This document shows, in pieces, positions 2,131-20,145 of a stretch of 64,000 nucleotides of DNA (the first letter of the stretch is position 1; every line of letters begins with the position of its first letter). The stretch is from positions 62,001 through 126,000 of the IMG/VR virus record IMGVR_UViG_3300033182_000980. One strand, 5' to 3'. A program made the position numbers and the translations under genes. Under the pieces are notes generated by a model, which was not told where the DNA came from, searched no databases, and saw nothing but the letters and a program-made list of their open reading frames with translations.

Positions 2131-2141
2131 AGGAAGCTCGC

Positions 2142-3670: not shown

Positions 3671-3679
3671 TTTATTTAT
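3668..3679 (+). promoter_or_regulatory. Motif A (TAGTTTnTTTAT), putative late promoter
   Basis: TAGTTTATTTAT; its TAG is the guaC-N stop; upstream of the endonuclease. Confidence 0.55.
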
Positions 3680-3722
3680 ATCTCTGATTATGATGAAACT
3701 AGGTATCGGTAGAGGTAGTGTC

Positions 3723-4667: not shown

Positions 4668-4791
4668 GTACAAGCTAGTAGAAATCAATACCCTAGAGAC
4701 TGAGCCTAACCCATCGGGTATCGCCTATGACCTTGAGGTCGAGGAGGATCACTCATATACGATTGGGGAGAATAGGACTGTAGTTCATAAC
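4657..4791 (+). mobile_element. Split intein C-fragment (IntC, 45 aa)
   Basis: Block [13 protein letters not shown] and block G VVHN followed by a +1 Ser. Confidence 0.9.
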
Positions 4792-5286
4792 TCTGCTTGT
4801 ACGACTCGTATTCAAGCAGGTGTGGGTTATCCACAGTTAAGTGCTGTGATTGAGTGTGCCGATGCCGCTCATGGCTTGGGTGGTCGCATCATGTCGGATG
4901 GAGGCTGTACCTGTCCTGGTGATGTAGCTAAGGCATTTGGAGGAGGTGCTGATTTCGTCATGCTTGGGGGTATGCTTGCAGGACATACCGAGAACCTTAG
5001 ACTGGATGACGAGGGTAACGCACTCTTCTATGGTATGTCCTCTGACACAGCGATGGAGAAGTATCATGGAGGGGTTAATGACTATCGTTCATCCGAGGGA
5101 CGAACCGTAGCCATTGAGCGTAGAGGTCCGATTAAAGATACTCTTCAAGATATACTTGGGGGTATTAGATCAACCTGTACTTATATTGGAGCGAGTGAGC
5201 TTAGAGAGCTGAGTAAATGCACGACTTTTATTCGTGTTCGTCAGCAGTATAATCCAGTGTTTGAGTCTAAGACGATTAAGAGCTAA
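4657..5286 (+). CDS. guaC: Split-intein C part fused to GMP reductase C-terminal half
   Basis: Own RBS (AGAGGAG) and ATG; after VVHN comes SACTTR...[22 protein letters not shown]...[28 protein letters not shown], the canonical GuaC sequence. Confidence 0.92.
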
Positions 5287-5290
5287 GTTA

Positions 5291-5340
5291 TAGTTTATTT
5301 ATGTATTCCTCTGTAAGAACCTTATCTTTACAGAGGAATA
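5291..5340 (+). promoter_or_regulatory. Motif A plus RBS-sequestering hairpin
   Basis: TAGTTTATTTAT 5291-5302; perfect 13-bp inverted repeat 5304-5316/5328-5340 containing the GAGGA RBS. Confidence 0.65.
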
Positions 5341-5344
5341 CATC

Positions 5345-5938
5345 ATGTATCTAAAGAGAGCATTACTTAACCTTGAGCGTAGGGTTGCTGATCTTGAAGC
5401 TGACCTTCAGCCTCAACTTGGTAAACCTGGTGGAGTCAAGCACACAACACAGCGTATTGACGAAGCCTTACCCGACGGGAGCCCGAAAGAAATCGAGCTG
5501 ATAGATACAGTCAATAAGGGTCAAGGGATCTCTAATCAAGACGCAAGGATTGTGTATCGCTTTGACGACTGTAATCCAGCTCTTGACGGAACGACTATGG
5601 TTAAGGGTTTTTGTGTCTCTTCTCATGGTCAGTTTAGAATGGACCAAAGAGGGATTACAGTTCGCAAGATCCAAGAGTTCTTCTTTAATCTGGAGAAGTA
5701 CCTAGAAAGGAATGAGACTAATCGGAGGACTTTCGACTTGCGAGACTCAATCAATAGAGGAATGGAAACCAAGTGGACAGATGAGCGTAGTAACAATCTC
5801 ACAGTAGTCTTTAGACTTGAGGGAGACAGTGCCAAGATCATCACTACTTATTACAAGAATAAGAAAGACCCGATCTTGACCGAGGAGAAAGACTACTCAC
5901 GCTTTATTCGACCTAGAGGTCGTAGACGAAGGCGTTAG
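5345..5938 (+). CDS. Putative BECR/DUF4258-like RNase-fold protein with a divergent coiled-coil leader
   Basis: N-terminal LLNLERRVADLEA resembles the leader; C-terminal SSHGQFRMDQRGIT...VVFRL...KIITTYY resembles the DUF4258 pattern. Confidence 0.45.
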   Translation: MYLKRALLNLERRVADLEADLQPQLGKPGGVKHTTQRIDEALPDGSPKEIELIDTVNKGQGISNQDARIVYRFDDCNPALDGTTMVKGFCVSSHGQFRMDQRGITVRKIQEFFFNLEKYLERNETNRRTFDLRDSINRGMETKWTDERSNNLTVVFRLEGDSAKIITTYYKNKKDPILTEEKDYSRFIRPRGRRRRR

Positions 5939-6342
5939 TAAGCACCTGCTATGTGTTCGATTTCTTCTTCGACCTTCATAGCAAGCATATACCAACGCTC
6001 TGCAAGGTCTTGGTAGTAGGGGTCTTTGCCTCTACTGAAAGAGGGCATCTTTTCAAGCTCACGCTCCATTTCTTGCATAGCCTTTAAGACTTTTTCTGCT
6101 GACCTACGAACAGGCGTAGAAGCTGTTCTCTGCTTGCTCTTGTACTCATTCGTGAGCCGATACTCTTTTACGAGAGCTTCATATTCTTTGTTCTGCGATG
6201 GGGTAAGACGATCTTGGTCTTCAAGGAGTTGAAGCTCATCTAACCTTGCTCTATCTTTTTTAGACATAGTGCGAGCTTGTCTCTCAAGGCGAGCAATACG
6301 ACCCTCAAGTTCACGAATTATTTCTGAAGCTGATCTTCTCAT
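5935..6342 (-). CDS. MRRSASE-leader protein 1 (unknown cargo)
   Basis: MRRSASEIIRELEGRIARLERQA; GGAGAA RBS. Confidence 0.85.
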   Translation of the reverse strand: MRRSASEIIRELEGRIARLERQARTMSKKDRARLDELQLLEDQDRLTPSQNKEYEALVKEYRLTNEYKSKQRTASTPVRRSAEKVLKAMQEMERELEKMPSFSRGKDPYYQDLAERWYMLAMKVEEEIEHIAGAY

Positions 6343-6386
6343 AGTTTGTTCTCCATTTGGTTAATATGACCACCAATGAAAAACCT

Positions 6387-6398
6387 ATAAAAGACCTA
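6387..6398 (-). promoter_or_regulatory. Motif A variant
   Basis: TAGGTCTTTTAT upstream of leader protein 1. Confidence 0.45.
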
Positions 6399-6401
6399 CA
6401 A

Positions 6402-6455
6402 ATAAAAAATGTCTCTTAAACACCCTCTGTGGCTTAGTGAGGGGTCTAAGAGACA
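6402..6455 (-). terminator. Intrinsic terminator downstream of the SSB-like gene
   Basis: Inverted repeat TGTCTCTTA (6410-6418)/TAAGAGACA (6447-6455) with inner CCCTC/GAGGG, followed by a T-run on the minus strand. Confidence 0.6.
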
Positions 6456-6528
6456 TAGAGCCTTTAGTTGAATCAAAGGCTATTGAGCGTATTCAACCAT
6501 GACTTAAGTCATGGGTCAAGGCTTTTTC

Positions 6529-7245
6529 TTAGAGCATACCGTCAAGGATCTCATCTGCATCAAAGCTAGAGTTGAAACCACCACCGCTGTTGCCTGTAGG
6601 CGAACCAACCGAACCACTCATCTTCTCACGAATCTGATCGAGAGTAAGGTCTTGAGCGATGTCATTTTGGATGTTTGCGTGGATAGGCTTAGCCGCTTCC
6701 ATACAAGTATTGAACATATCAGAACCCTTGTCGCTCAAGGTCTTGAACAGAGACTCTTTACAAGGAGCGAAAGTCATCTTGTGGAACTGTGGATCAGTCA
6801 CGGTGATTGAGATGTCATGCTGACTCAAAGGGAACTCGGAGTTGATAGACTCAAGCTGACGATACTTATCGAGTGAGAACACCCAAGTCTTGACCTCAAA
6901 CTCACCATTGGCGAAGCGAGCCTTATCAAGCGTACCATTAGCGTCTGTCGGCCAGAAGATGAGAGTAGTAGCGATTGAGGTCTTTGAGGGATTACCCGCG
7001 ATCTTCTGATACTCTGGACCATGATCGAGGAAGTATCCGACATCCTTGTGATAGAGGCGGCGACCACCCTTGAACGAGGGGTTGGTCGGATTACCATTTG
7101 CGTCCTCGAACTGAACAGCGTTGTCCTCAAGACCTGGAAGAGCCACGAAAGTCACACGAAACTTTCCCTTTTGTGGCTTCCAACGAACCTTACCACCTGA
7201 GAGGATTGGTGAAGTAGAACCGAGTGTGAAGTCTGAAAAACCCAT
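6529..7245 (-). CDS. Putative phage single-stranded DNA-binding protein
   Basis: Beta-rich core with aromatic residues, Gly/Ser linker and acidic C-terminal tail FDADEILDGML typical of phage SSBs. Confidence 0.5.
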   Translation of the reverse strand: MGFSDFTLGSTSPILSGGKVRWKPQKGKFRVTFVALPGLEDNAVQFEDANGNPTNPSFKGGRRLYHKDVGYFLDHGPEYQKIAGNPSKTSIATTLIFWPTDANGTLDKARFANGEFEVKTWVFSLDKYRQLESINSEFPLSQHDISITVTDPQFHKMTFAPCKESLFKTLSDKGSDMFNTCMEAAKPIHANIQNDIAQDLTLDQIREKMSGSVGSPTGNSGGGFNSSFDADEILDGML

Positions 7246-7425
7246 AGGGCATTCTCCTGTATATATTGCCTGTCGGCAGTTAAAGTTAAGAGCGTTAGCG
7301 AGTCATCCGAAGTGAGTGGCTCTGTTGCTCACATACTCTTATACGATATACACAAGATGTTGCCGAACTTTTCCCAAAAAACTTTCAGAGAAATAGTAAG
7401 TGCCCGAAAGAGTTGAAGAAAAACC

Positions 7426-9027
7426 TCACTTAATCTTTGGTCGGGTGTCGCATCTCTGCCTTAGAAGGTAAAGATTTGTCTCGTGTGTGTTCGCCATAGA
7501 CATGATAAAGTCGTCCATACCTAATGTAAGGCCACCCTGCTCTTTAAGCATATCATAAGCGTTCTTAAAGATGACCTGTAGGCCCTCTTCAATCAATAAA
7601 GCTCTGCGTATCGGGTCATTCATGCTGTGAGCTTCGGCTAGAGGTAAGAGGTGGTTAGCCATGAGCTGTGCTTGTTCAACAGCATTAACAGCCTCTACCC
7701 CATATGTGCCGACAATCTTTTCAGCCAGTGTGTCGATTTCTTCAATAAGAGATGTGTAAATCCTCTCCATCAGCTCATGATCACCGTAGAAGCTTGATCC
7801 TTTAACCTGCCAATGGCTCGTCCAGTGTGCAAAGTGAGCACCACGAAGAACAGCTAAGAGCATTTGAAGTATGGCGAGGTTATCTGTCCGATCACAGGTG
7901 CTCGCTCTTTTGTTGTATCTCATAAGTTCTTTCTTAGCGTTCATGGCTTCCCTTGCATCATAAAACACGATCATCTCCGAGTGATTACCAGCTATACGAT
8001 AGAAATCTTCTTTGCGACCAATGAGATCTCTACGAGCTTGAGCAATAGACACTACCTCAACATCTTTGAGCTTAACAGGCTTATCCCAAATGACCTCCTC
8101 AACAAAGCCCTTTTTAGGCTTGGTGCTGGTCTTGAACTTTAAAGCCACCATCTCCTTAGCTCTGCTTTTCTTACCCCCACTCATCTGAACGGAGTAGACA
8201 TCCCAACCCCACACACCAGAGATCGCATATACACCACCAGCACTAGGTGCGTCATCATCCATGATGTGATTAGGTCTAAGATAGCCGTCTGCGATGATGT
8301 CATCTACTCGGTTCGCATAGGTGTAGTGATAGAAGAAATCTTTAGAGAGGTTAATGTGGTAGTAATACTTGCTAAAAGCATTGGATCCGTACTCTTCAAG
8401 TTCTTCATCATCAAGCTCACCACCCTCGTGATAAATCAGTTTTAGATCACGCAAAGAGGCTTGTTTATCTATGTGTCTCTTAGCTGGAGCATCTCTCTCA
8501 TCTAGGGTGAACTCTCTCCAAGCATCTTGGGGGTCTTCTTCTAAGACAGCGTAAGATCCTTCAATCAGATCGAAGAACATTTCCATGTCCTCTCTATCGT
8601 ACCACTCGACCCGATCTAAGAAATCGTTGAGGTCTACTACGATAGCCGTCTCACCTTCGACATAGATGTTAATGGCATCAAACATCTCGGACAGAGACAT
8701 GAGGTAAGCTGGCTTACCCTCGTAAACGAACTCTAGCTCGAATGGGAGGGAATACCCTATAGAGCCTCGTTTGTGCTTCTTGTAGTATTTCTTACGATAG
8801 TCTTGGCGATTCTTTCTATAGTTGGGATCAGTTCTCATTTTCTTCCTATGCTTCTTTCTGTTTTTTCGTCTTTGGACTAGATTAGTATTTCTCTTGCGTA
8901 AGTTTTTTGTCCTAGTCCTCATACGCCTTCTGCGTTTGATCTTAGGATTAGTCCTACGCTTAGTGCCAGCCTGTAGCTCTTCAGCAAAGAGGTCATCTGC
9001 AAGTATTTCGGCTAAGAAATCACTCAT
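7426..9027 (-). CDS. Multidomain protein: basic N-region, ADP-ribosyltransferase-fold-like domain, Dps/ferritin-like C-terminal domain
   Basis: Start at 9027 (overlaps upstream stop). FYHYT....IIADGYLRP is ART-like; AHFAHWTSHWQVKGSSFYGDHELMERIY...EIDTLAEK matches the Dps ferroxidase motif. Confidence 0.65.
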   Translation of the reverse strand: MSDFLAEILADDLFAEELQAGTKRRTNPKIKRRRRMRTRTKNLRKRNTNLVQRRKNRKKHRKKMRTDPNYRKNRQDYRKKYYKKHKRGSIGYSLPFELEFVYEGKPAYLMSLSEMFDAINIYVEGETAIVVDLNDFLDRVEWYDREDMEMFFDLIEGSYAVLEEDPQDAWREFTLDERDAPAKRHIDKQASLRDLKLIYHEGGELDDEELEEYGSNAFSKYYYHINLSKDFFYHYTYANRVDDIIADGYLRPNHIMDDDAPSAGGVYAISGVWGWDVYSVQMSGGKKSRAKEMVALKFKTSTKPKKGFVEEVIWDKPVKLKDVEVVSIAQARRDLIGRKEDFYRIAGNHSEMIVFYDAREAMNAKKELMRYNKRASTCDRTDNLAILQMLLAVLRGAHFAHWTSHWQVKGSSFYGDHELMERIYTSLIEEIDTLAEKIVGTYGVEAVNAVEQAQLMANHLLPLAEAHSMNDPIRRALLIEEGLQVIFKNAYDMLKEQGGLTLGMDDFIMSMANTHETNLYLLRQRCDTRPKIK

Positions 9028-10276
9028 GGTCAGCCTTCTTTCTCCGTTTTTCGGCTCGTTGGTTCTTCTGTTTAATGGTAGAGACACCACCGCCTGGTCT
9101 ACGCTTGTACTTCTCAGGGTTCTTAGCATAGTTTTTCTTGTACTTCTTGTAAGTAGGGTTATGTTTCTTACGCTTGTAGAGTCTCTTCTGCTTCAGAAGA
9201 TTTCTACGATATTTAACCCGATACCTACGCTTGTACTTTTGAGACTGGCGTTTGGCTTGCCCCTTTTGTTTCCTCTGTCGCTTATTTCCTTTAGGTGGGC
9301 GATAGTTGTATCGGAACAAAGCGACTTTGATGAGGTCATCTCCGTCTATATCCCAATACTCGAAATCTTCAACAGAACCCATGACCCTACGCTTTAGGCC
9401 GGTTGAAGTGGATTGGTCTATATGAGGGTTTCCATACTGATCGCCTGGAATACCACTTGATCTCGGACGCTCATGGAGGGCTTTTCCATCGGGATGATCG
9501 TTTAATGCACTTGGGTCTTTCTTTGGACGATTCGCTCCACCTTGACCACTAGAGTCGGGAGGTGAGTTAATAACTCCTGGACCAACTCTTTGTTCGTCAC
9601 GACCTTCTGGATGTCCACTAGGTAAAGGAAGAACTCGATCTCTTTGAGGCTTACCGTCTTCATAATCTTCTCTTGATTTCTGTGGTGATGAAGTGTCGTT
9701 ATTGATTTGGTCTTGTCGGGTTTTATCGACCCATGTTTTGACACCTGCTAAGTCTTGTGCCGGTTGAGCCGCTGACTGTAGATAGCGAAGGGCTACCCTA
9801 CTAGCAGACGCTTTCTTCTTCTCTGTGATCTCTTTAGCTTCTTCACTGAAAGTCGGAGTATTAACAGGCTTCTTCCCACGATGTTTCGCTTCTTCACGCC
9901 TTTTCTTTTTGGCAAGCTCGGCTCGGTCTTCTTTAGACATTCCCCATGCCTTCTCTCGTGGCATACACTTGAGGGGTTTTTTGCCCCCACTTGTAACATC
10001 TGACCACTCTTTTTCACTAGATATGGCACATGGGCCAACAATGTCTCCTGGTTCATAGGTCTTGTCCTCTCCATCTTCTTTTTTGATCGTGTGTTTTACA
10101 GGTGTTATAGCAATCCAATCGCCCCATGTAGCACGATCATCGGGATCTCCACCACCATGTCCTGCAAACCAAGTACCTAACCCACCCTTACCAGTGTTCT
10201 TTTTTTTGGGGTCATCACGCTTTACGGACTCTAAATAGCGTTCAGCAACCTTTTCGATAAGACTTTTATTTTTCAT
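9020..10276 (-). CDS. Hypothetical basic multidomain protein with RVA-type motifs
   Basis: MKNKSLIEKVAERYLES; KGGLGTWF; SRVALRYLQSA; very K/R-rich C-terminus. Start inferred from GAGGT spacing. Confidence 0.75.
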   Translation of the reverse strand: MKNKSLIEKVAERYLESVKRDDPKKKNTGKGGLGTWFAGHGGGDPDDRATWGDWIAITPVKHTIKKEDGEDKTYEPGDIVGPCAISSEKEWSDVTSGGKKPLKCMPREKAWGMSKEDRAELAKKKRREEAKHRGKKPVNTPTFSEEAKEITEKKKASASRVALRYLQSAAQPAQDLAGVKTWVDKTRQDQINNDTSSPQKSREDYEDGKPQRDRVLPLPSGHPEGRDEQRVGPGVINSPPDSSGQGGANRPKKDPSALNDHPDGKALHERPRSSGIPGDQYGNPHIDQSTSTGLKRRVMGSVEDFEYWDIDGDDLIKVALFRYNYRPPKGNKRQRKQKGQAKRQSQKYKRRYRVKYRRNLLKQKRLYKRKKHNPTYKKYKKNYAKNPEKYKRRPGGGVSTIKQKNQRAEKRRKKADHE

Positions 10277-10287
10277 CGCCATATACC

Positions 10288-12183
10288 TCAAGGCCTACTA
10301 GAGATGAGTACACATTTACCAGAAGAGGGGTACTTACTCGTAAGCCTAACCCAAAGTTTTTTAGCAGTCGGATTGGTACTGCCGTTTGGTACGCAATAGT
10401 GGGGGGCAAAAACGAAAGGCTTTTTCAACTCATCCCAAATGTGTCGTATAAACCCTAAATAAAGATGATCTCCTAGCCTCTGACCTAAGAAATCTTCGTA
10501 TATCTCGGACTCGGACACAAAAGCCAAATAGATACTTGAGGTTGATCTGTCTCCCGCCTTTTCTTGAAGAACCCCTATGTCATAGTCACAAGGGCTGTCA
10601 AAGTTATAACTCCTACCCCACTCATACACAGCACCTTGAATACAACCTAGTTCCTCACCACCCCAACTTGTCCCATCGTCCTCCTGCATTTGAAGATTGA
10701 GGAAGAAAAGCACATCTAACCTCTCATGTCTGGTGTGATACTTTAAATCTACTTCCTCAAACTTGTGAGGTATAGAAGATAGTTTCAAGTATCTATGAGC
10801 CACCCTCTTTGCAGACTTCTCATAGCAGTTCTTATAGGGGCGACATGAAGCCTTTTCAGAGAAGCCCATGTCATCACAGCTTTTAGACTCACAATGCTCT
10901 TTATCCCACTTGCGTGGCATCTTGAACTCGGAGCTTTGTTTCTTCCACTTGCCCCCTAATCGCTTGTACTGAGCCAAAGCCCAACCGTTAGCATAAGCCG
11001 ATGGGAAGGTCTGAAACCCCTTGCCTTCATTGACAGGATTGACGGACTCTTTACCCCTAGAAACAGGTTTACTAGACTCACCTTTAGCTAGAGCTTGTAT
11101 CTCGGACCATAGCTTCTCATCGGTAGGTATGCTCTTTCCCCCTGCTTTCCTTAGAGGTGAAGAGTTATTGGCGAAGCCACTATCATAAGGGATAACCCTA
11201 GCACTACCGCTACCACTATCATGCACATAACCTCCGTCAAAGCCCTCGGCGGGTTTACGACCATAGGACTCGGAACGATCAAGATTTCTCGATTTGAGGT
11301 TAGGTGAGTCGGGGCTTGGGCGACCTATATTCCTCGCCCCATCACCATTTGGCATTTGAGAGCCTTCACCTTTGTCCTTAAGGTCTGTGCTTTTACCTGT
11401 GGGTGTTCCATTACTAAGGGTGCTTAACTCATCGGGTGGGCTAACCTGCCTAAAGAAATCGGCAACACGCATTTTTGCTGTTTCGGGAAACTCATTTTTG
11501 ATCTTCCTCACAGCTTTAATGTACTTTTTAGGTGCGTACTTCGCTAAGTCTTTAAGCCATGCCATAGGCTCTTTTAAATGCTTAGACCTGTATGAAGGAC
11601 GACTCGACTCACCTACAACATAAGAAACGATGTTTGCCACTTCATTTGGCTTTCTTCTCGATACGAAGTTGATTGCATTGATGGTGTCCTCTAAGCGAGG
11701 GTAAAACTCATTGTCATCTAAGCGATGGTGGAGTAGCTCACCTGTTTCTTGTCTATATTGTGGAGTCCTCTCCCTAAGACCAGGAAGCCCTGCTGTTGGA
11801 GAGTCCGCTCTCGGATCACCGTCTCGTGATCTGGTATAAAGGATTTGATATACATGAACCAACTCGTGTGCGACTACTCTATGAAGGGCTTCTGCTAGTT
11901 CTCTACCCTCATAGTTTTCTTCAAAGTAGAGAAGGTTCACATAAAGAACAGAGTTAGTTGGATCGTATTTAGCTTCAACTCTACTATACTTTTCGGACGC
12001 ACTAGGGGGTATGATCTCTACCCTCAAGTCTAAGTCCTCTACATGACCGCGAGTCCTCGGTGGTGGGGGTACAGTGACATTTTTACTAAGTTTGTCATAG
12101 ACACCGACTTGGCTTAATAAGTATTCTTCGACTTGTTCCACCACAGCTCTAGGTGGTCTTATTCTACTCGTTCTACTCTGCAT
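10288..12183 (-). CDS. Multidomain protein: HExxH zincin-like domain, PSAYANG/KRLGG module, Cys module, GNAT-like C-terminus
   Basis: VAHELVHVYQ; FPSAYANGWALAQYKRLGG; MPRKWDKEHC...GFSEKASCRPYKNCY; FLGQRLGDHLY...TNPTAKKLW. Preceded by a TAGTTTCTTTAT motif and GGAG RBS. Confidence 0.65.
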   Translation of the reverse strand: MQSRTSRIRPPRAVVEQVEEYLLSQVGVYDKLSKNVTVPPPPRTRGHVEDLDLRVEIIPPSASEKYSRVEAKYDPTNSVLYVNLLYFEENYEGRELAEALHRVVAHELVHVYQILYTRSRDGDPRADSPTAGLPGLRERTPQYRQETGELLHHRLDDNEFYPRLEDTINAINFVSRRKPNEVANIVSYVVGESSRPSYRSKHLKEPMAWLKDLAKYAPKKYIKAVRKIKNEFPETAKMRVADFFRQVSPPDELSTLSNGTPTGKSTDLKDKGEGSQMPNGDGARNIGRPSPDSPNLKSRNLDRSESYGRKPAEGFDGGYVHDSGSGSARVIPYDSGFANNSSPLRKAGGKSIPTDEKLWSEIQALAKGESSKPVSRGKESVNPVNEGKGFQTFPSAYANGWALAQYKRLGGKWKKQSSEFKMPRKWDKEHCESKSCDDMGFSEKASCRPYKNCYEKSAKRVAHRYLKLSSIPHKFEEVDLKYHTRHERLDVLFFLNLQMQEDDGTSWGGEELGCIQGAVYEWGRSYNFDSPCDYDIGVLQEKAGDRSTSSIYLAFVSESEIYEDFLGQRLGDHLYLGFIRHIWDELKKPFVFAPHYCVPNGSTNPTAKKLWVRLTSKYPSSGKCVLISSRP

Positions 12184-12212
12184 AATAAGCTCCTTTTCTT
12201 TATATTGGAGCG

Positions 12213-12224
12213 ATAAAGAAACTA
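12213..12224 (-). promoter_or_regulatory. Motif A
   Basis: TAGTTTCTTTAT upstream of the 12183-7426 operon. Confidence 0.6.
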
Positions 12225-12228
12225 TAAC

Positions 12229-12240
12229 TGTAACCCCTTA
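12229..12240 (+). promoter_or_regulatory. Motif B (TGTAACCCCTTA)
   Basis: Upstream of the ncRNA candidate and TATAAT. Confidence 0.5.
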
Positions 12241-12253
12241 GTTATTGTATAAT

Positions 12254-12510
12254 GTCGTTGGGGGATGCCACTAACCCGACAAAGCCTCTATGCTGTTGTA
12301 GAGGTAAACCACCCAATGAAAGGGTAGTGGTCGTTGTGAGTGATTCTGACCTCGCATCGTAGGTTCAATCTCAAAAGGGGAGTGCGAGCCACCAAGGTGA
12401 GATGTTGCGTCTTTCCTATATAAATCGGGCTTTACGCAGACTCAGATATGCTTGGCGAGGTCAGCTCACTTGCCCGACACCTCGGCTACTCTTAGGAGAG
12501 TCGGGGTGTT
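12254..12510 (+). ncRNA. Candidate structured non-coding RNA of unknown class
   Basis: TATAAT at 12248-12253; perfect 10-bp long-range helix CTGACCTCGC (12346-12355)/GCGAGGTCAG (12455-12464) extended by GTGAG/CTCAC; local hairpins; 3' terminator-like hairpin 12477-12509; no ORF. Confidence 0.55.
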
Positions 12511-12523
12511 TGTAACCCCTTAT
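12511..12523 (+). promoter_or_regulatory. Motif B (TGTAACCCCTTAT)
   Basis: Upstream of the 12566/CHC2 genes. Confidence 0.55.
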
Positions 12524-12565
12524 TTATAGAAACGAAGCCCCAATCTATCCAGAAAGGAATGAACC

Positions 12566-12799
12566 ATGACATCAGAAGGTTTTGCAGTTTTAGCGTTCAT
12601 CGCCCTATGTTTCGGGCTGATCTACATGGATCAAAATAGAGAGGTGTCCGTACACCTTTGCGAGTCCGAGGGCGTATCTACTTATGTGAGTAGGATCGCT
12701 CCCCCTCAAGAGTTGTCGTTTGGTGATTGCCATGAAGAAGTGATGGTCAATGAAAGATACTATCACTTACGACAAGTGATGAAGCGTGGGGTCAAATGA
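12566..12799 (+). CDS. Small membrane protein
   Basis: 77 aa, N-terminal hydrophobic helix, AAAGGA RBS. Confidence 0.65.
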   Translation: MTSEGFAVLAFIALCFGLIYMDQNREVSVHLCESEGVSTYVSRIAPPQELSFGDCHEEVMVNERYYHLRQVMKRGVK

Positions 12800-13308
12800 G
12801 CAAACGAGCTGAACGGATAAAAGAGAAGATCCCCATCCTCTCGGTATTAAGTGCCTATAACTATGATGTACATGGTCGGGATCATCAGCAACAGTTTAGA
12901 TGCGACCTACATGGTGATGGTTCGGATAACGCACCCTCGGCTCGTGTGTATCCAGAGACAAACACATGGTTCTGTTTCGCCTGTGGTAAAGTGCGAGACT
13001 CCATCGCTACGGTCATGGAGAAAGAGGGGTTAGACTTTGGTAAGGCTTGTACTGCCCTTGAACTCAAATATGGACTTGAGGTCTGGAAGTACGAGCCTAA
13101 GAAGGACATCTTTGAGGACACCTATGAAGACCCTACACGCAAGGAAATACTAGTGCGTAGGGTAGAGGGTCTATTAAACGAGAAAACCTCTAGGAGAGAG
13201 GATTATGAGGACACCTTACGCTATTGGGAGGTGTTCAATATGCTCTCCTCACTAGAGGACTCTAAGGTGCGTCAATGGGAGAAGCTATATAAGGCTTTAT
13301 CCTCTTAG
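12796..13308 (+). CDS. Stand-alone CHC2 zinc-finger protein (DnaG primase zinc-binding domain)
   Basis: FRCDLHGD...PSARVY...WFCFACG; ATGA overlap with the upstream gene; no TOPRIM domain. Confidence 0.85.
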   Translation: MSKRAERIKEKIPILSVLSAYNYDVHGRDHQQQFRCDLHGDGSDNAPSARVYPETNTWFCFACGKVRDSIATVMEKEGLDFGKACTALELKYGLEVWKYEPKKDIFEDTYEDPTRKEILVRRVEGLLNEKTSRREDYEDTLRYWEVFNMLSSLEDSKVRQWEKLYKALSS

Positions 13309-14981
13309 AAGCGACCACCGTCATCTTCTGGTGGGTTATACTTTAAGCCAAGATTTTTAGCGATGATCTCAATCGCTTCTGTGTTCTCGGCTAACATACG
13401 ACCTGCTTCGCCATAGACACCTCTAAGAACCTCATTAAACTGAGAGTCATTGAGCGTCCACATATCACGCTCAAGTTTAGCCTTAGTGGTCATAGGGTCT
13501 ACATTGAGGAGTTCTAAGATCACATCAATATCCAATGACCCCTTCTGATAAAGATTGAAGAGGGCATCGAATGTATCTTGGTTGTCTCTTAGCCCAAGTC
13601 GAGTGAAGCTAAGGGTAGGGTGTATTACAACCTCATCACCATCTTCATCTTCCTCAATGAAGCCCATGCGTCTACACATCGGTTTCAAGATGTTCTCCTC
13701 GACCATCTCTTGAAGAACCTCACGCATGAGCATATAGCGTGTGTTGATGACTTCTAGGTTGATCCTATCACCACTATAGCTTGACTCGCCCGAAAGCAGA
13801 GACTCGGTAACACCTAGACCAGCATACATTTGTCGGTCGGTCATGTCGTATTCACCCGATAGCTCAAGTAGACGAGAGTCTGCACCCATCTCCTCCCAAG
13901 AAACTTGGAAGTTAGCGATGATCGAGTAATCGGGGTCTTGGAGTGCAAGGTCAACTTGATCTCTTAACTCCTCAACATCAGCCGCGTCCATATCTTCTGC
14001 ATAAACGAGTCGGATAGGTGTCATGTGTCTTGAGGCGATTGAGGTTTGAGCCTGTCTTAACTTATCACGATACACCAAGATTCTGAGGCAACGCTCAAGC
14101 ATGGAGTGTCCACGAGGCTCATATTGAGATTTCTTACGAGCCATGTAGTAGACGAACGACCCTTGATCTGGATCGGTGTTGAGGTCAATGTTGCGTCCAT
14201 CTCGGATGGCTTCAACGACATCACCTGGCATTGAGTCTACTATCCTAAGAGCTGAAGGATCATTAACCGAAGCTCGTTCGACTACATCACGAGTCTTGCT
14301 GTCGGGGATGAGCTGGATGATCTTTTCGTTGGTGAAAGGAAAGCTCTCCATGTGGACTTGTTCGGGAGGGAGGATGCGAACACCAGTCCACCCTTTATAG
14401 TTCTTCTTGAGCCACTTGTAAGCTCGTTCATGGGAGTCCTCATATTCAGTCCACTCTGTGAAGGCAGACCCATCTTCTTTGAGAACATTCCGACCACTAT
14501 GAGTCACCTCTTGAGGCACATCTGGATTATTATCTTCACAGAAAACGAACACCTCACCGAGTAGGTTAAACTCATGTAGGATTTCTATAAGGCGGTGAAG
14601 TAGTCCGACACGCTTCGCCCACTTTTCACAGAACCTAAGTGCCTCATAAGCCATATCCCGATTACGAGCTTTGGGTAGACCTAATCTGATCTTAGAGAGG
14701 GGTAGCTCTGTATGTAGGTCTATCGCTTGACCTACGAAGGGGTCTGTTCGATAGAAGAACCTAAAATAGTTGCGTTGTTCGTCTTGGCTTTGGGGTAGCT
14801 CAAGGAAGTCAGTCGATAGCTCTGGTGAGTAGAAGTTCCCACCCGATCCCATCATAGAGCCACCTGTGGTCATAGCGACCTTGACTCTTGATTTCATCTC
14901 GGCAGGATTGAGCTTACGAGTGATCGCTTTTGATCGGGGTTTAATCTTCCCAACTGGTTTGGCTTCTAGTTCTTCGCTCAT
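13305..14981 (-). CDS. Phage portal protein
   Basis: 558 aa; RFFYRTDPFVGQAIDLHTELPLS, YEPRGHSMLERCLRIL and SYSG..INLEV resemble large-phage portal sequences. Confidence 0.7.
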   Translation of the reverse strand: MSEELEAKPVGKIKPRSKAITRKLNPAEMKSRVKVAMTTGGSMMGSGGNFYSPELSTDFLELPQSQDEQRNYFRFFYRTDPFVGQAIDLHTELPLSKIRLGLPKARNRDMAYEALRFCEKWAKRVGLLHRLIEILHEFNLLGEVFVFCEDNNPDVPQEVTHSGRNVLKEDGSAFTEWTEYEDSHERAYKWLKKNYKGWTGVRILPPEQVHMESFPFTNEKIIQLIPDSKTRDVVERASVNDPSALRIVDSMPGDVVEAIRDGRNIDLNTDPDQGSFVYYMARKKSQYEPRGHSMLERCLRILVYRDKLRQAQTSIASRHMTPIRLVYAEDMDAADVEELRDQVDLALQDPDYSIIANFQVSWEEMGADSRLLELSGEYDMTDRQMYAGLGVTESLLSGESSYSGDRINLEVINTRYMLMREVLQEMVEENILKPMCRRMGFIEEDEDGDEVVIHPTLSFTRLGLRDNQDTFDALFNLYQKGSLDIDVILELLNVDPMTTKAKLERDMWTLNDSQFNEVLRGVYGEAGRMLAENTEAIEIIAKNLGLKYNPPEDDGGRF

Positions 14982-15207
14982 GCTGATCCTTCTTATATTT
15001 TACGACAGCTTTTATCACTACTTTAAGTAGCTTGCTGTGTTTTGGGTGTCCTTCAAAGAATAATACCCAAGAGCCACCCTTACGAGTAAACACAATAGAA
15101 ATCTTTTCAAGCAACGAGTCTTTTGGATCTGATTGTCCATGACTCAGTTGCAAGATACGAGCGATGACTCGGTAGTCAGCTCTTTTTCGTTCTCTAGGTA
15201 ATGACAT
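14941..15207 (-). CDS. Hypothetical protein (overlaps portal start)
   Basis: 88-aa ATG ORF filling the gap; 41-nt overlap lowers confidence. Confidence 0.4.
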   Translation of the reverse strand: MSLPRERKRADYRVIARILQLSHGQSDPKDSLLEKISIVFTRKGGSWVLFFEGHPKHSKLLKVVIKAVVKYKKDQHERRTRSQTSWED

Positions 15208-15248
15208 ATTTTATACCCCCTCTGTTGTTAGGTGGGGATATAAAACAA

Positions 15249-15536
15249 CTATTGAGGTATATGATAACTATATGCTTCTGCCATTCGGATCATGCCGTCT
15301 ATGGTTGGATCATGGCTATTGGTATAAAACCTCAACCCCCCAAACTTTTCTTTGATCTGAACGACATAGAAGATGCCCGCATCTGGTGTCTGTATGAGGT
15401 GGCTCTGGATTTGATTGCATAAGGTATCGACCAATGGATACCAAGACTCGGACACTTCAAGATATGTCAGAGTCGGATCACCATATTCATCTGTGAACAA
15501 TGACTTCCACTTAGCGATCAACTCATCATGTGTCAT
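15249..15536 (-). CDS. Conserved phage hypothetical protein (QIKEKFGGLRFY family)
   Basis: GW-like SWYPLVDTL and QIKEKFGGLRFY motif common in phage proteins; ATG at 15536 overlaps the upstream stop. Confidence 0.7.
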   Translation of the reverse strand: MTHDELIAKWKSLFTDEYGDPTLTYLEVSESWYPLVDTLCNQIQSHLIQTPDAGIFYVVQIKEKFGGLRFYTNSHDPTIDGMIRMAEAYSYHIPQ

Positions 15537-16041
15537 TTTGCACCTCGTTGTACTGAACATAGAGTCCGTCTTGGTTGTATACCACATCCTCTACAAAGGG
15601 GTAAGATTTCTTTAAGTCCTCTAACTGACCTAAACGAATGTGAAACTTGTTCGGGTAGACGGGTTTGAACTTCAAGTATCCATTTTTATCTTCGACTAGC
15701 TCCCATTTCTCTCCTGTGTGAAGAGATGACTCATGTACACCTAGATTAAACTGAATATGGAGGATCAGCTTTTCTTTAGTTTGGGGTGTGGGCTTATCCA
15801 TGAACTCTTTGCGAGCCTTTTGGTATGACTTCCAATCCCATGTGGTAGGCACATCGCTGATAACCAGATTACTAAGGTGTTCGAGACAGGTAGACGAATA
15901 CTCGGCAACTTGAACTAAATCCTTATCCGACCCCTCGAATGAGTACATCTGTGTAAGCATAAGATGTTCATTAAGGATAGCTTCTAGTGCTTTGTTTAAT
16001 CGGTCTTGGTTTTCGGAGGTGATCTTTAAGATAGGGTCCAT
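15526..16041 (-). CDS. Hypothetical protein
   Basis: 171-aa ORF with AAAGG RBS. Confidence 0.65.
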   Translation of the reverse strand: MDPILKITSENQDRLNKALEAILNEHLMLTQMYSFEGSDKDLVQVAEYSSTCLEHLSNLVISDVPTTWDWKSYQKARKEFMDKPTPQTKEKLILHIQFNLGVHESSLHTGEKWELVEDKNGYLKFKPVYPNKFHIRLGQLEDLKKSYPFVEDVVYNQDGLYVQYNEVQNDT

Positions 16042-16054
16042 GCCTTTACCTTTG

Positions 16055-16066
16055 TAGTTTATTTAT
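16055..16066 (+). promoter_or_regulatory. Motif A
   Basis: TAGTTTATTTAT upstream of 16106. Confidence 0.6.
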
Positions 16067-16105
16067 ACCTACTTCTTTGCAGTAGAATAAGCCGAAGGAG
16101 AGATA

Positions 16106-17827
16106 ATGAGAGACAATCAGATATACCTCTACAATACCACAGTAGATGAAGCACTAGAGATACTTGGGATGGAATCTCGTAGAGACACAGCCCTCATTAA
16201 CCATGACGAGTTTGAAGTTAAGCTCAATAAAAAAGGCGACCATGTTATGGTGACTCTGTTAAGGGGTCTTGGCGACATGGACATTGATGACGGCATTATT
16301 CAGATCAAGATTGATTTTCCAGGTAAGTACCGAGATATGGAGAGCATTGATCGTGTACGAGCCGTTCTTGCACTTAATCCAAACAGCGATTGGTGGAAGG
16401 GCATCGTAGAGGAGCTTGAGGAGGGCTATCCTTTATCATGGAAAGTCGAAGAAATCTTGATTGAAACTGAAGAGCGTATTGAGAATCCAGATGAGGATGT
16501 ACTTGCTATGCTCGACCAAGCGATTGCAAGCAATCCTCGTTTTAGACTCCTTCAATCTTTCAAACAGCAAGTTTTATCTGGTCGTGAACTTTCAGAGCGA
16601 CAGATGGAGATCCTTGAGGAGAACTTAGGTTCAAGTGTTCCCTCAAACACCAATCAGATCGCTCGGATTAATGAAGCTCTCGCACTTGATCCTAGAAATC
16701 GTTTCGTTAGCCAGCTCAAGCAAAAAGCCGAGAATGGCATCACTTTGTCCGAGAGACAGATGAATGTGGTGGAAGAGATCATCGGAAGTCAGTCATCTCC
16801 TGCCGCTAAGATGCTCGCTGACCTTAAAGCCAATGCTTATCTTGAGCGTGAGGACTTTATGCTTATCAATAAAGGTCAGCGTAGGGGCATTGACTCACTC
16901 AATGATGAGGAGCGTAAGCGTTTGCGTCATCTCATCTACCGTAATGAGCGTAAGCTCGACAACACTTACTCCAAAGATGAAGTCAGAAGGCTTCTAAAGA
17001 AAGGAACAGCTATGCGTAGACTCGCTAGTGAAGTTATTCGTGATCTTGAGATGAGGATTGCTCGTCTTGAGGCAAACCTCAATCGTACTGCAAGCATGAC
17101 TCGTGAAGCCGCTGGAGATCCTCAGCTCGCTGGAGTTCGCTCAAGCACAGCTTACCATGAGGGTCGCTCAATGGCAGAGGCTACCTCTTGTATGCTTTAT
17201 CTCATCGGTGAGTCAGAGAATAAGAGCAAGTTCTACGAGATGGTCATCAACGGTTCTACCGTAGAAATCCTTTATGGTCGTCTCGGTTCTACCGGTCGTA
17301 GAGCAGATAAGTCATTCATGGACTCTTATGATGCACAGGCTTTCTTTGTTAAACAGCTCAAGTCTAAGCTCAAGAAAGGTTATGTCTCTGCATTCGCACA
17401 GCGTGGCGAGCATCGTAAGAGCGGTCCTCTCTATGGAACTTACCCAATCGGACTTACCTCTACTCCTGGACCTTGGCAGAACCAAGACATCGCTTATGAC
17501 CAAGCGATGATTACAGATACAGTTTCTGTTGTTCGTGCGGCGATTGCTTCATTCCAAGAGGACGGTATTGTTGATGAGCGAGCAATTGCTATGCTTATGT
17601 CTACACAGCGTTCACTCGGATTAAACAGGGATCAACTCTCACAAGAGTGTGCTAAAGAGATCGGTCTTGCTCTTGATCGTATCCAAGGTACAGGTCGTGC
17701 GGGTCGTCAGCCTGTTGAAGTTCGTACTCGTACTGCCATCAAGGGTCTACAGAAACTCATGCGTAAACTTGAGGGTGCTATGACTGGTGGTCGTAGAAGA
17801 GCTTTTTATCAAAAAAAAAATTGGTAA
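16106..17827 (+). CDS. Repeat-containing protein with internal MRRLASE leader and WGR domain
   Basis: Tandem ~50-aa repeats (NP..F..S.KQ....G..LSERQM..IEE); MRRLASEVIRDLEMRIARLE from 17012; NKSKFYEM...VEILYGRLGSTG...KLKKGY is WGR-like. Confidence 0.75.
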   Translation: MRDNQIYLYNTTVDEALEILGMESRRDTALINHDEFEVKLNKKGDHVMVTLLRGLGDMDIDDGIIQIKIDFPGKYRDMESIDRVRAVLALNPNSDWWKGIVEELEEGYPLSWKVEEILIETEERIENPDEDVLAMLDQAIASNPRFRLLQSFKQQVLSGRELSERQMEILEENLGSSVPSNTNQIARINEALALDPRNRFVSQLKQKAENGITLSERQMNVVEEIIGSQSSPAAKMLADLKANAYLEREDFMLINKGQRRGIDSLNDEERKRLRHLIYRNERKLDNTYSKDEVRRLLKKGTAMRRLASEVIRDLEMRIARLEANLNRTASMTREAAGDPQLAGVRSSTAYHEGRSMAEATSCMLYLIGESENKSKFYEMVINGSTVEILYGRLGSTGRRADKSFMDSYDAQAFFVKQLKSKLKKGYVSAFAQRGEHRKSGPLYGTYPIGLTSTPGPWQNQDIAYDQAMITDTVSVVRAAIASFQEDGIVDERAIAMLMSTQRSLGLNRDQLSQECAKEIGLALDRIQGTGRAGRQPVEVRTRTAIKGLQKLMRKLEGAMTGGRRRAFYQKKNW

Positions 17828-18105
17828 GAACAGCGGTTTCTAAGACCAAGATGTTTCACGATGTGAGAGAAAACCTAGATGACAATCTAGGCAGACTCCA
17901 CGACCTTCGAGAGAAGTTTGAAGATCACGAGTTTTTAAGTGAGAGTCGTGATCTTCAAAAAATCTTTAACGATGCCTCTGAAATGCTAGATAACCTCAAT
18001 GATGAAGATGTGCTTCGACCTTACAAAGACTTCTTAGATAGGTTTAATAAGATCGAAGCTATGCTCAATGAGGTTAGGACGAGATGTCTACATAGACAGC
18101 ATTAA
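17821..18105 (+). CDS. Helical hypothetical protein, possibly the -1 frame continuation of 16106 ORF
   Basis: TTG start directly after an A10 run and without an RBS. Confidence 0.55.
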   Translation: MVRTAVSKTKMFHDVRENLDDNLGRLHDLREKFEDHEFLSESRDLQKIFNDASEMLDNLNDEDVLRPYKDFLDRFNKIEAMLNEVRTRCLHRQH

Positions 18106-18158
18106 GTTTGTAGTCTTTAGATACACACTCTTTAGTAAATAAGCTAAGGAGGTGTATC

Positions 18159-18482
18159 GTGGATAACGACTCAATAGACCCTGTTGAAGTATTACAAGCA
18201 ATACTCAACAATATCGTAGCTCAGTCTGAATCTAAAGAAGACCTCATTAAGCTATGGTTTTATGTGGGTCGCATGATGGGGATAGATCGTATCTTCCCCG
18301 AAATGCAAGTGATGACTACGCCAGATGATAAGGGTGTAAATCAACCGATCCTTCTTGTCGGCACATTACATCCTCTTGTCATTGAGTATCTGACCGACCA
18401 AAAGATACTCACAGAGGACATCGCCCAGATCTGTTTAACAGAAATCAAGGAAATGGATGAGGAAGATGAGGTCTTCCACTAA
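18159..18482 (+). CDS. Hypothetical protein
   Basis: GTG start with AAGGAGG RBS. Confidence 0.75.
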   Translation: MDNDSIDPVEVLQAILNNIVAQSESKEDLIKLWFYVGRMMGIDRIFPEMQVMTTPDDKGVNQPILLVGTLHPLVIEYLTDQKILTEDIAQICLTEIKEMDEEDEVFH

Positions 18483-18904
18483 TGATGTATCGTAGAGATG
18501 GGTTGATCTTTATGACCCTAAATGATCCTCATTGGAATAACCCTAAGATCGCTAAGATCCTTCCTTATGAGAGTACAAATTGGGGTGCGTTCTCTGACCT
18601 AGTAGGGACACCTGTAGAGCGTTTAATCCCCGAAGTCTCGCATGATATACTCGACCAAGCAATGAGAGGGTTCACAACCCCTCTGATGAACCAAAACCTT
18701 AGAGAGCCTAGAGGCTGTCTAAAACTCCTTGATGTACCCAAAGATTGTGACGAAAAAGACCACTGTCTTTCGTATAACAAAGACCGATGTATCTTGGGGC
18801 ATCGTAAAATGCCAGAGTGCTTTTCACCACTCGCCACTCAATCTCTTAGACCTCTTGTTCTAGCTTGGCTAGAAGGATTCCACATAATCCGTGAAAGGGC
18901 ATGA
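18482..18904 (+). CDS. Hypothetical Cys-containing protein
   Basis: Translationally coupled (TAATG); C..C..C...C pattern. Confidence 0.7.
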   Translation: MMYRRDGLIFMTLNDPHWNNPKIAKILPYESTNWGAFSDLVGTPVERLIPEVSHDILDQAMRGFTTPLMNQNLREPRGCLKLLDVPKDCDEKDHCLSYNKDRCILGHRKMPECFSPLATQSLRPLVLAWLEGFHIIRERA

Positions 18905-19554
18905 TTATGAAATACTTTAACCACCCACCCACAATGCGTAGAGTTTATGATGACGAAGAAGCTCAAACTCAACATCGGAAAAACGCACAAGCCGATTTCT
19001 ATGGTGAGATTACGGTAAGCGACAACCACATCTACCTCTATCAAGGCATCTCTCCCAAGGCTGTTATGGAGATGGGCATCGCTATCAAGTCCATTGGTCA
19101 ACAGATCATCAACATGGTCACTGATCTTGGACTCTCCCAAGCACCTGCTATCCACCTTCACATTAACTCTGGTGGTGGGTGTGCCTTTAGTGGTCTTGCT
19201 GGAGCGAGCCATATCTTAGACTCGGACATCCCTGTGTTCACCTATGTAGAGGGTTCAGCGGCTTCTGCGGCCACGATCATGTCTTGTGTCGGGGCTAAAC
19301 GCTTCATCACAGAGCATAGCTTCATGCTCATTCACCAGATCAGCACTGGTGTATGGGGTACATACGAGAACCTAAACGATGAGAAAGAGTCTATGGACTC
19401 GCTCATGGAGATGTTGGAGTCAATCTACCTCAAGAACACCAAGATGAAGAAGAAGCAACTCAAAGAGCTTCTAAAGCGTGATCTCTGGATGAACCCTAAG
19501 AAGTGTCTTGAGCTTGGATTGGTAGACGAGATCATCAAGTACGAGCGTGTTTAA
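18901..19554 (+). CDS. clpP: ClpP-like serine protease
   Basis: IHLHINSGGG, EGSAASAATIM (catalytic Ser), SFMLIHQ (His), RDLWMNPKKCLELGLVDEI. Confidence 0.85.
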   Translation: MIMKYFNHPPTMRRVYDDEEAQTQHRKNAQADFYGEITVSDNHIYLYQGISPKAVMEMGIAIKSIGQQIINMVTDLGLSQAPAIHLHINSGGGCAFSGLAGASHILDSDIPVFTYVEGSAASAATIMSCVGAKRFITEHSFMLIHQISTGVWGTYENLNDEKESMDSLMEMLESIYLKNTKMKKKQLKELLKRDLWMNPKKCLELGLVDEIIKYERV

Positions 19555-19566
19555 TAGTTTCTTTAT
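19555..19566 (+). promoter_or_regulatory. Motif A
   Basis: TAGTTTCTTTAT upstream of 19606. Confidence 0.6.
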
Positions 19567-19605
19567 ATCACCCACATAATCAGACACTCTATTCACACTA
19601 GGAGA

Positions 19606-20145
19606 TTGATTATGTGGGATAATGATGACATCGTATTCGGGTCGTTTCAAAAGACCTCAAGCATGGACGCTGTTCTTGAGACTAAGATTTCTGATCTAAC
19701 AGATCGTGGTCGCAAGAACAAAGCTACAGCCGCCAACTTTGAAGATGGTATGCGTGTAGTGGCTCACACTAATAATGGTGTAGTCATTCCTGGTCAGCTC
19801 CCGACTGCTGGTACAAAGGGAACAGTCGTATCTGTTAAAACTGCAACAGGTGATGTGACCTCCCTTGATGGAGAGGTGTTTGTTCAGTTTGACGGACGCA
19901 ACAAGATTGATCGGATTCCAGCTAACTTTCTGCGTGTGGCAAGCATGAAGGTTGCGAGCATTGATGATCACTTCATCGTGCTAAGTGGACCTAATCTTTC
20001 AGCGAGCTTTATGAGCGTAGCAGGTGGTGAGTCAACCCTAGTGCATAAGGCGACCCAAGACCTTTGGAGCATGAAGGTGTCTGACGATGGGTCATATGAT
20101 GTAGAGCGTCTGTTTGACGACAATGGTGATCCACTTAAACTTTGA
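19606..20145 (+). CDS. Hypothetical, putative virion protein
   Basis: Preceded by TAGTTTCTTTAT and AGGAG; contains KTS/S and RVA/SMKVA/S linkers. Confidence 0.7.
   Translation: MIMWDNDDIVFGSFQKTSSMDAVLETKISDLTDRGRKNKATAANFEDGMRVVAHTNNGVVIPGQLPTAGTKGTVVSVKTATGDVTSLDGEVFVQFDGRNKIDRIPANFLRVASMKVASIDDHFIVLSGPNLSASFMSVAGGESTLVHKATQDLWSMKVSDDGSYDVERLFDDNGDPLKL

Follow-up and report, generated by a model that had tools for sequence, protein, structure and literature searches.

A conserved, structured non-coding RNA gene outside the known RNA families in an uncultured marine jumbo phage

Few functional structured RNAs are known from phages, and for several of these, including GOLLD and ROOL, no role is known; both are Rfam families of orphan structured RNAs that are tied to phages or prophages and to which no function has been assigned. 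To our knowledge, among the well-known phage RNAs only the phi29 pRNA plays a structural part at the portal. The put RNA of phage HK022 comprises about 65 nt that form two stem-loops. Here, we describe a locus in a virus record of 375,691 bp, rated complete by CheckV, of which bases 62001-126000 were analyzed (64,000 nt, referred to as the window; coordinates are those of the window unless stated otherwise). The plus strand of positions 12260-12512 holds the gene of a conserved, structured non-coding RNA without a match among the known RNA families. Small stable phage RNAs in general have precedents; the class of this RNA is new, as all family memberships that could be tested failed.

The genome, the relatives of its portal and the marine occurrence of the locus identify the source as an uncultured marine jumbo phage; DNA of the locus is present in sequencing runs of 17 studies, chiefly marine and seawater metagenomes. 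Among the genes of the window are those for a portal protein, a ribonucleotide reductase that carries a LAGLIDADG insert, and helicases of the SNF2, UvrD and RecD types; two ORFs are longer than 2000 aa. The portal gene is located about 800 nt from the RNA and matches phrog_16240 (E 4e-32). Its nearest counterpart in the phage collection belongs to an uncultured 485-kb phage (72% identity), followed by those of an Acidobacteria phage (37%) and Bacillus phage G (27%). The proteins flanking the RNA are a 631-aa protein (p631) without a family match and a 77-aa protein (p77).

Several further features of the genome were observed. The large subunit of the ribonucleotide reductase (24381-27101, +) is split by a LAGLIDADG_3 domain, which is probably an intein or a homing-endonuclease insert. 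A 2421-aa ORF with zero Pfam matches (49760-57025, +) adjoins a 2084-aa ORF (57084-63338, +) that starts with an Mtd_N domain (major tropism determinant N-terminus); the latter was rejected as the target of a diversity-generating retroelement (DGR), as the genome has no reverse transcriptase. On the minus strand between 7426 and 12183, the 631-, 423- and 567-aa proteins have shuffled segments in common, the order and number of which differ among related phages. The homologue of the 631-aa protein at locus L031 has a HELVH motif and a long low-complexity middle, and of the three proteins the 567-aa protein alone gave a hint in Pfam, below the cut-off (DUF5856), and matched a DNA-binding PHROG. 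Nine tRNA genes (Arg twice, Gly, Asn, Tyr, Glu, Lys, Leu, Met) lie at genome positions 173376-180001, outside the window, and no tmRNA was found in the phage genome.

The original prediction had placed a sequence motif and a TATAAT ahead of a GGGGG start, and all three elements are present at the start of the RNA gene (Table 1). The motif corresponds to the box GTAACCCCTTA, of which the genome holds 62 exact copies with a stereotyped downstream part: the box is mostly followed by tCTATA(G/A), hairpins of the CTAGTGTCGAGGG type, a Shine-Dalgarno sequence within a small 4-bp hairpin (ACUCCCAAAGGAGAAC) and an ATG. The boxes of the window, at 12230, 12512, 29823 (-) and 30536, precede the SNF2 helicase gene, a 196-aa gene, and the p77 and DnaG zinc-ribbon genes; those outside the window precede many small genes, clustered at 334-362 kb. 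Box and TATAAT are kept in every homologue that spans the promoter region. The RNA would be transcribed from one of these approximately 60 class promoters of the phage itself, and its expression is probably early or middle, since the same promoter class precedes helicase, primase-like and many small genes. As a separate observation, ATATAA(A)G occurs shortly upstream of the start codons of the 631-aa gene (12198-12207, -) and the portal gene (about 14992-14998, -) and may be a late promoter distinct from the box class. Within positions 1-20000, 15 sigma-70-type promoter-like sites were counted, compared to 32.8 in shuffled sequence, and canonical intrinsic terminators were scarce. The low number of both suggests that transcription is largely independent of host-type signals.

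Two positions were considered for the start of the RNA. The usual spacing from a TATAAT would place it at 12260. The promoters of phages T7 and SP6 end in CTATAG, as does the class element, and by analogy with the position after TATA in this promoter class the RNA would alternatively start at G 12247. A Pfam search for a T7-type RNA polymerase, run without a positive control, was empty, and a GUCG/CGAC pairing predicted for the 13-nt 5' leader that would begin at 12247 is not conserved and was rejected. An oligo-dT marine metatranscriptome, in which contigs cannot prove ends and DNA carry-over is possible, was the one RNA-library run with part of the locus; a single low-depth contig of 151 nt was found on 12260-12399, with 12 more letters unaligned; it was the sole contig within 11800-13000. 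The contig fits a start at 12260 and a preferential abundance of the RNA.

Table 1. Coordinates of the RNA gene, its helices and the neighbouring promoter elements in the window.
Feature	Position	Strand	Characteristics
Promoter	12230-12253	+	class box, tCTATA variant and TATAAT
Class box GTAACCCCTTA	12230-12240	+	exact match
GTTATT	12241-12246	+	variant of the usual tCTATA element
TATAAT	12248-12253	+	invariant
GGGGG	12260-12264	+	
RNA, 253 nt	12260-12512	+	fold z, covariance-model matches, RNA-library contig
5' domain	12267-12331	+	P1 enclosing P1a and a 16-nt strand holding ACCACCC
P1	12267-12277 with 12322-12331	+	bulged A 12274
P1a	12284-12291 with 12298-12305	+	C-G to U-A compensation
Alternative local hairpin	12332-12340 with 12351-12359	+	10-nt loop
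P2, long closing helix, 14 bp	12338-12343 and 12346-12353 with 12457-12464 and 12466-12471	+	
P3	12362-12372 with 12380-12390	+	loop AAAAGGG
P4, variable hairpin	12395-12417	+	sequence and length free
Near-invariant block, 51 nt	12429-12479	+	junction strand, P2 3' strand and linker to the 3' hairpin
3' hairpin T, 15 bp	12476-12510	+	loop UUAG
Second promoter box	12512-12522	+	exact box directly 3' of the RNA; drives downstream genes

The plus strand of 12258-12515 folds with a predicted energy of -97 kcal/mol (z -3.7), and only one of 200 shuffled sequences was as good, compared to -76 kcal/mol (z -1.85) for the opposite strand. In agreement with the original prediction that no ORF covers the region, none of at least 40 aa occurs over 12184-12565. 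A 37-codon frame starting at ATG 12403 is shifted by a 1-nt indel in two of the homologues described below (L002 and L031) and has lost its ATG in a third (L003). Therefore, the conservation of the RNA is not protein-coding; also, none of the small ORFs over the RNA is conserved. The RNA is a single-copy, gene-like unit, with no second or diverged copy in the phage genome.

Homologues were collected by a search of IMG/VR via the 631-aa flanking protein, which gave 18 loci; the RNA is present in five of these, representing two distinct sequences. Covariance models were built from three (R1) and eight (R2) sequences, and R1 found the RNA once in the phage's own genome. Metagenomes were scanned with an 18-mer of the near-invariant block, which returned 13 loci, seven of them true and six chance matches in coding sequence; covariance-model scores of the seven further loci were 244-316 bits. 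In total, eight distinct RNA sequences are available, the others being 83-94% identical to that of the window. Synteny is fixed: the 631-aa gene (-) is followed by the RNA (+) and by up to two inserted small genes (+); next come the 77-aa gene, the DnaG zinc-ribbon gene (+) and the portal gene (-). The phages bearing the RNA are close to each other, with portals that are 96-99% identical.

Outside this group the RNA was not found. Searches with R1 and R2 showed its absence from the relatives L013 and L018, whose portal is 88% identical, both at the syntenic place and elsewhere in these records, and gave nothing in loci L007-L019, in four to five whole relative records and in LR745208.1; among distant relatives, they returned one 23-nt match, located inside an ORF. 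An analogous RNA within the syntenic gap of L013 was rejected, as the fold of this gap (z -0.39) is no better than that of shuffled sequences. A pattern scan of IMG/VR recovered only the five known contigs and two chance matches (L027, L028). No exact match to a 25-mer of the near-invariant block was present in one genome each of 185,579 prokaryote species, and neither megablast and blastn against 50,697 phage records nor blastn against E. coli genomes gave a match. Across the sequences searched, the RNA is confined to a narrow group of closely related phages and is accessory in nature. A strict link between the RNA and p77 was rejected, as the relative G003 has a p77 homologue and no RNA.

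The eight distinct sequences were aligned (alignment A4) and scored with a hand-set structure of 75 pairs. Pairing is possible in 97.1% of the cells, compared to 40-48% when the partners are slid. Five pairs changed on both sides, and none of 500 shuffles reached the observed values, which are drawn from only eight variants of one shallow clade. P1 is almost invariant (98.8% of cells paired) and shows G-U to A-U changes. The CCTCTA/TAGAGG hairpin that had been proposed at 12285-12304 exists and forms part of P1a, where a C-G pair is replaced by U-A. The proposed long-range helix was likewise recovered as P2, joining 12338-12353 with 12457-12471; it can pair in 100% of the cells, and is present in both the MFE and the centroid fold, with the exception that two extra pairs at its top are not conserved. 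The 3' strand of P2 is invariant and each of the four changes in its 5' strand leads to a G-U pair; no pair is changed on both sides. P3 contains three pairs changed on both sides (AAU/GUU to UUA/UAA in L029) and one further pair that occurs as U-A, U-G or C-G across the variants. In L003 another, shorter hairpin takes the place of P4, and in L037 P4 is enlarged by a 26-nt insert; some hairpin is always kept. In the 3' hairpin, 99.2% of the cells pair; G-U pairs are replaced by G-C or A-U in L036 and L033, and a C-G pair by U-A in L029. Thus, within the alignment, P1a, P3 and the 3' hairpin are supported by compensatory and wobble changes.

Not all helices of the original prediction fared equally well. 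The ATCTCA/TGAGAT helix is not supported by the alignment, in which ATCTCA (12368-12373) sits in the covarying P3 and TGAGAT in the variable P4. Similarly, TGCGT belongs to P4 and its proposed partner ACGCA to the invariant strand, where the sequence is kept in L003 even though TGCGT is absent from this variant. The ACCAC/GTGGT hairpin competes with the P1 pairing CCACTAaCCC/GGGTAGTGG; the two are near-isoenergetic once the 5' leader is added, but the changes of A to T in L003 and of A to C in L031 hit ACCAC/GTGGT and spare P1, and the GAAA loop of this hairpin is not conserved. The overall claim of an approximately 250-nt structured, independently transcribed RNA of unknown class is supported by conservation, covariation, strand-specific G-U pairs and the lack of an Rfam match, and the first three of these show that the element is real at the RNA level.

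Conservation is pronounced in the 51-nt block 12429-12479, in which a single site (12452, in L036) varies among the eight variants. By comparison, in the DnaG zinc-ribbon gene next to the RNA, 58% of the third-codon columns are variable across seven of these genomes. Judged by this comparison, the RNA is under purifying selection that is strong relative to neighbouring synonymous sites. Constraint on primary sequence of such strength means that the block is read as sequence, be it by a partner molecule, through tertiary contacts or by its own two alternative pairings. Invariant core strands amid helices that tolerate change, along with a peripheral hairpin of free length, would also be expected if the junction strands formed the active site of a ribozyme, self-cleaving or other. 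However, no known ribozyme family matches, and no sequence feature points to a cleavage site, with contigs being unable to show ends; we consider a ribozyme very unlikely.

The selection also bears on the question of whether the element functions as RNA at all. The 5' end of the RNA (G-run, loop, CCC) and the tip of the 3' hairpin resemble two standard leader hairpins of the phage; the tip (ACUCUUAGGAGAG) is similar to the Shine-Dalgarno hairpins of its mRNA leaders. Based on this resemblance, the RNA may have arisen from the phage's own leader. The same likeness (GGGGG, loop, CCC, and the tip), and the position at a hot spot of gene insertion, could be taken to indicate a decaying remnant of an mRNA leader or small gene, or a site acting at the DNA level, such as an origin or packaging site, without any RNA function. 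This is highly improbable given the strong purifying selection relative to neighbouring synonymous sites and the pairs that are kept via G-U, which are workable only in plus-strand RNA. In addition, the element is kept in eight of eight variants from many samples, with DNA in runs of 17 studies.

A column-wise search for pseudoknots and extra helices revealed an alternative local hairpin (Table 1) for which pairing is possible in all eight variants; besides this hairpin, the search returned only pairings of G-runs with pyrimidine-runs and invariant candidates. In the alternative hairpin 95.8% of the cells pair, seven of the nine pairs vary and one G-C to A-U compensation occurs (L003, L037), with a weak shuffle control (46/500). 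As the hairpin uses the 5' strand of P2, the two are mutually exclusive. For the growing transcript, the fold prediction gives this hairpin until about nt 195, before the 3' strand is made. Folds containing the hairpin lie 1.6-7.5 kcal/mol above the best fold, and the predicted best fold of L033 contains it. With the alternative hairpin formed, the freed 3' strand can fold a small hairpin of its own (GGCGAG with CUUGCC), and two loops of this state carry CUGAC and GUCAG. According to these fold predictions, the alternative hairpin may represent either a folding intermediate or a true two-state RNA.

Such a two-fold switch, in which the 3' strand is either locked in P2 or freed by the pairing at 12332-12359, would open a further possibility. 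An RNA built from leader modules could act as a decoy or sponge for a factor that reads the leaders on about 60 transcripts, an idea based on the resemblance to the leader hairpins, or the freed loops could build multimers; we regard this as rather doubtful. Multimers would also be expected of a self-assembling or packaging RNA like the phi29 pRNA, in which the CUGAC loop of 12332-12359 and GUCAG of the 3' strand pair between molecules and the gene is near the portal for that reason. The portal gene is indeed only 800 nt away, and the complementary stretches are conserved and each able to sit in a hairpin loop. However, the same pairing is possible within one molecule, as P2, and predicted to be stable, and relatives with an 88%-identical portal do not have the RNA. 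The promoter belongs to the class of replication-type and small genes and not to the ATATAAG type of portal and p631, and Rfam gave no match, the phi29-type pRNA family included if the release holds one. A packaging role is therefore hardly probable.

At the 3' end, the terminator-like stem of the original prediction was confirmed as far as the stem-loop at 12476-12510 is concerned, which is present and covaries, but the tail consists only of UUUG or UUUUG, and a terminator scan made no call on the hairpin. With this poor U tail the hairpin may not terminate transcription; the RNA would end at the strong 3' hairpin or be trimmed to it. Five of the eight variants retain an intact second promoter box directly behind the hairpin; in L003, L037 and L029 this box is degenerate. 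As a side observation, GGGGT of the 3' strand of the 3' hairpin can pair with ACCCC of this next promoter box (12503-12519, +); the resulting 5-bp hairpin with a T-rich run was called by the terminator scan and is not conserved in L003, L037, L036 and L033.

The stretch between the RNA and the 77-aa gene (12513-12565 in the window) is an insertion hot spot for small genes. In the related phages (L002:2960-3668, L031:7195-7838, L036:937-1206), it holds none, one or two extra genes (72, 122, 133 and 93 aa), the first of which has a promoter box upstream, and two DNA runs carry 743 and 1106 extra letters at this place. The next gene 3' of the RNA thus varies and is p77, the 72-aa gene or the 133-aa gene.

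The arrangement at the 3' end has to be considered with regard to a cis-acting leader, riboswitch-like, a protein-dependent attenuator or an element of processive antitermination, that sets read-through from the promoter at 12230 into the p77 and DnaG zinc-ribbon genes. In line with this, the promoter precedes a conserved domain of several helices, in which the junction strands are invariant and a peripheral hairpin is free in length, and a strong hairpin then lies ahead of plus-strand genes; a conserved hairpin competes with P2; in every variant, CGAGGU (12456-12461) is able to pair with ACCUCG (12479-12484) within the 3' hairpin; and the second promoter box is degenerate in L003, L037 and L029. 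However, the would-be antiterminator comprises 6 bp, compared to the 15 bp of the 3' hairpin; it cannot block the upper half of that hairpin, and folds in which it is enforced lie 11-23 kcal/mol above the best one. The 3' hairpin forms with either P2 or the alternative hairpin. Accordingly, membership in the terminator-antiterminator class was rejected, as there is no exclusive pair of comparable strength and no constant downstream gene. Five of the eight variants have a full promoter directly after the hairpin, one or two unrelated small genes lie between the RNA and p77 in several variants, and no riboswitch or leader family of Rfam matches. The variable downstream gene (p77, 72 aa or 133 aa) does not fit the control of one specific gene. 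A cis leader is the main rival reading, although we consider it unlikely.

The search against known RNA families, as suggested by the original prediction, left the RNA outside of all of them. At gathering thresholds, none of the 4227 models of Rfam 15 matched within the 64-kb window. At E values up to 10, only two lncRNA chance matches of 12-15 bits occurred in 12100-12650, and at E values up to 1 no match was obtained for four homologous loci. ARAGORN at default settings called neither a tRNA nor a tmRNA in the RNA region, as had been expected from the absence of recognizable signatures. With thresholds lowered to 80%, the program reported a 'tRNA-His'-like cloverleaf at about 12308-12384 in seven of ten sequences, and the string GGTTCAATC resembles a T-loop. 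This tRNA-like or tmRNA-like reading is the least probable of those considered and was already disfavoured: just two or three pairs of the called T-stem are real, and most of the anticodon stem consists of G-U pairs; the call requires GGUUC as T-arm, which according to covariation pairs with GAGCC in P3; the CCACCA string reads CCAACA or CCAGGA in other variants; the default thresholds give no call; and even the relaxed search made none in the window sequence, L033 and L029. The relaxed calls of a permuted tmRNA and of 'tRNA-His' were rejected, as they conflict with covariation or are inconsistent between variants.

Further identities were rejected on the basis of the gene content. RVT_1 had no match in the whole 375,691-bp genome and the RNA is single-copy, which excludes a retron msr-msd, a DGR template and a DRT-type ncRNA. 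The genome also lacks matches to the Cas12f1-like TNB domain (PF07282) and to Transposase_20, and a TnpB/Cas12 omega RNA and an IS110 bridge RNA were rejected for this reason. A bacterial Y RNA of the YrlA type acting with a phage-encoded Ro protein was likewise discarded, as neither TROVE (Ro) in the phage genome nor Rfam gave a match; a Ro protein encoded by the host would remain compatible. A search for antisense targets showed that complementarity of the phage genome to the RNA is limited to matches of at most 13 nt, which is about chance level.

Taken together, we favor a gene for a stable, structured non-coding RNA that would act in trans as an accessory factor, independently of the downstream genes, over a cis leader, and assign this reading a probability of roughly 0.5. 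The RNA has its own promoter and a second promoter after its 3' hairpin, occurs in eight variants at a fixed position with a near-invariant stretch at 12429-12479, has a strand-specific, non-coding fold with two conserved, mutually exclusive pairings of 12338-12353, and carries the sole RNA-library contig within 1.2 kb. Its absence from the relatives with an 88%-identical portal and from LR745208.1 is in agreement with an accessory role. Several points weigh against this reading. No candidate partner emerged from the analysis; the complementarity of up to 13 nt within the phage is that expected by chance; the poor U tail of the 3' hairpin may not allow termination; and in L003, L037 and L029, with their degenerate second box, the RNA could be the 5' part of an mRNA. 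In addition, expression is indicated by one low-depth oligo-dT contig that possibly derives from DNA, and the eight variants form one shallow clade in which P2 shows no change on both sides.

The RNA consists of a 5' domain (P1, P1a) and a central domain closed by the 14-bp P2 and containing the covarying P3, the free-length P4 and an unchanging strand of about 50 nt. The invariant strand together with P2 would constitute the surface that is read by a protein or RNA partner, and the competing hairpin at 12332-12359 could release the invariant strand, so that two working states are possible. The data show the gene-like unit, its fold, the purifying selection and the narrow distribution; trans action, a partner and two-state behaviour are what we infer, and the best-supported mechanism would be partner binding via the invariant strand, possibly gated by the two-state fold. 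The RNA is compact and clearly bounded, and selection on it is strong; as it occurs in a narrow group, its reach is limited. Its context is readable, as the promoters and leaders of this jumbo phage, which seemingly avoids host-type promoters and terminators, form a stereotyped system. If the RNA binds a phage or host factor, it would provide a handle on gene control in uncultured jumbo phages.

Among the described systems, HK022 put and other RNAs of processive antitermination are likewise promoter-proximal structured phage RNAs followed by a terminator-like hairpin; put is much shorter, and nothing in the present data on the RNA described here points to read-through or polymerase binding. 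Riboswitches and attenuators have in common with it a junction core, a closing helix with a competitor, a peripheral hairpin of free length, and a strong hairpin ahead of genes that run in the same direction. However, the alternative pairing found here spares the 3' hairpin in all energetically reasonable folds, most variants have a promoter behind the hairpin, and the next gene changes from variant to variant. The phi29 pRNA is also a phage-encoded structured RNA of a similar size class, and at our locus the portal is nearby and complementary stretches could pair between molecules, but these stretches can also pair within one molecule, Rfam gives no match, and close relatives with the same portal lack the RNA. 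With the phage's own leaders, the RNA shares the box, a similar G-run first hairpin and a 3' tip like the ACUCnnAAAGGAGA element; it differs by about 200 nt of conserved structure between these two elements and by the lack of a gene thereafter. GOLLD and ROOL resemble the RNA in being non-coding, phage-carried multi-helix RNAs with invariant junction strands. Compared to these families, to neither of which it has a match, the RNA is much smaller (about 250 nt), occurs in one shallow clade and is not located beside tRNA genes, as the nine tRNAs of the phage lie about 100 kb away.
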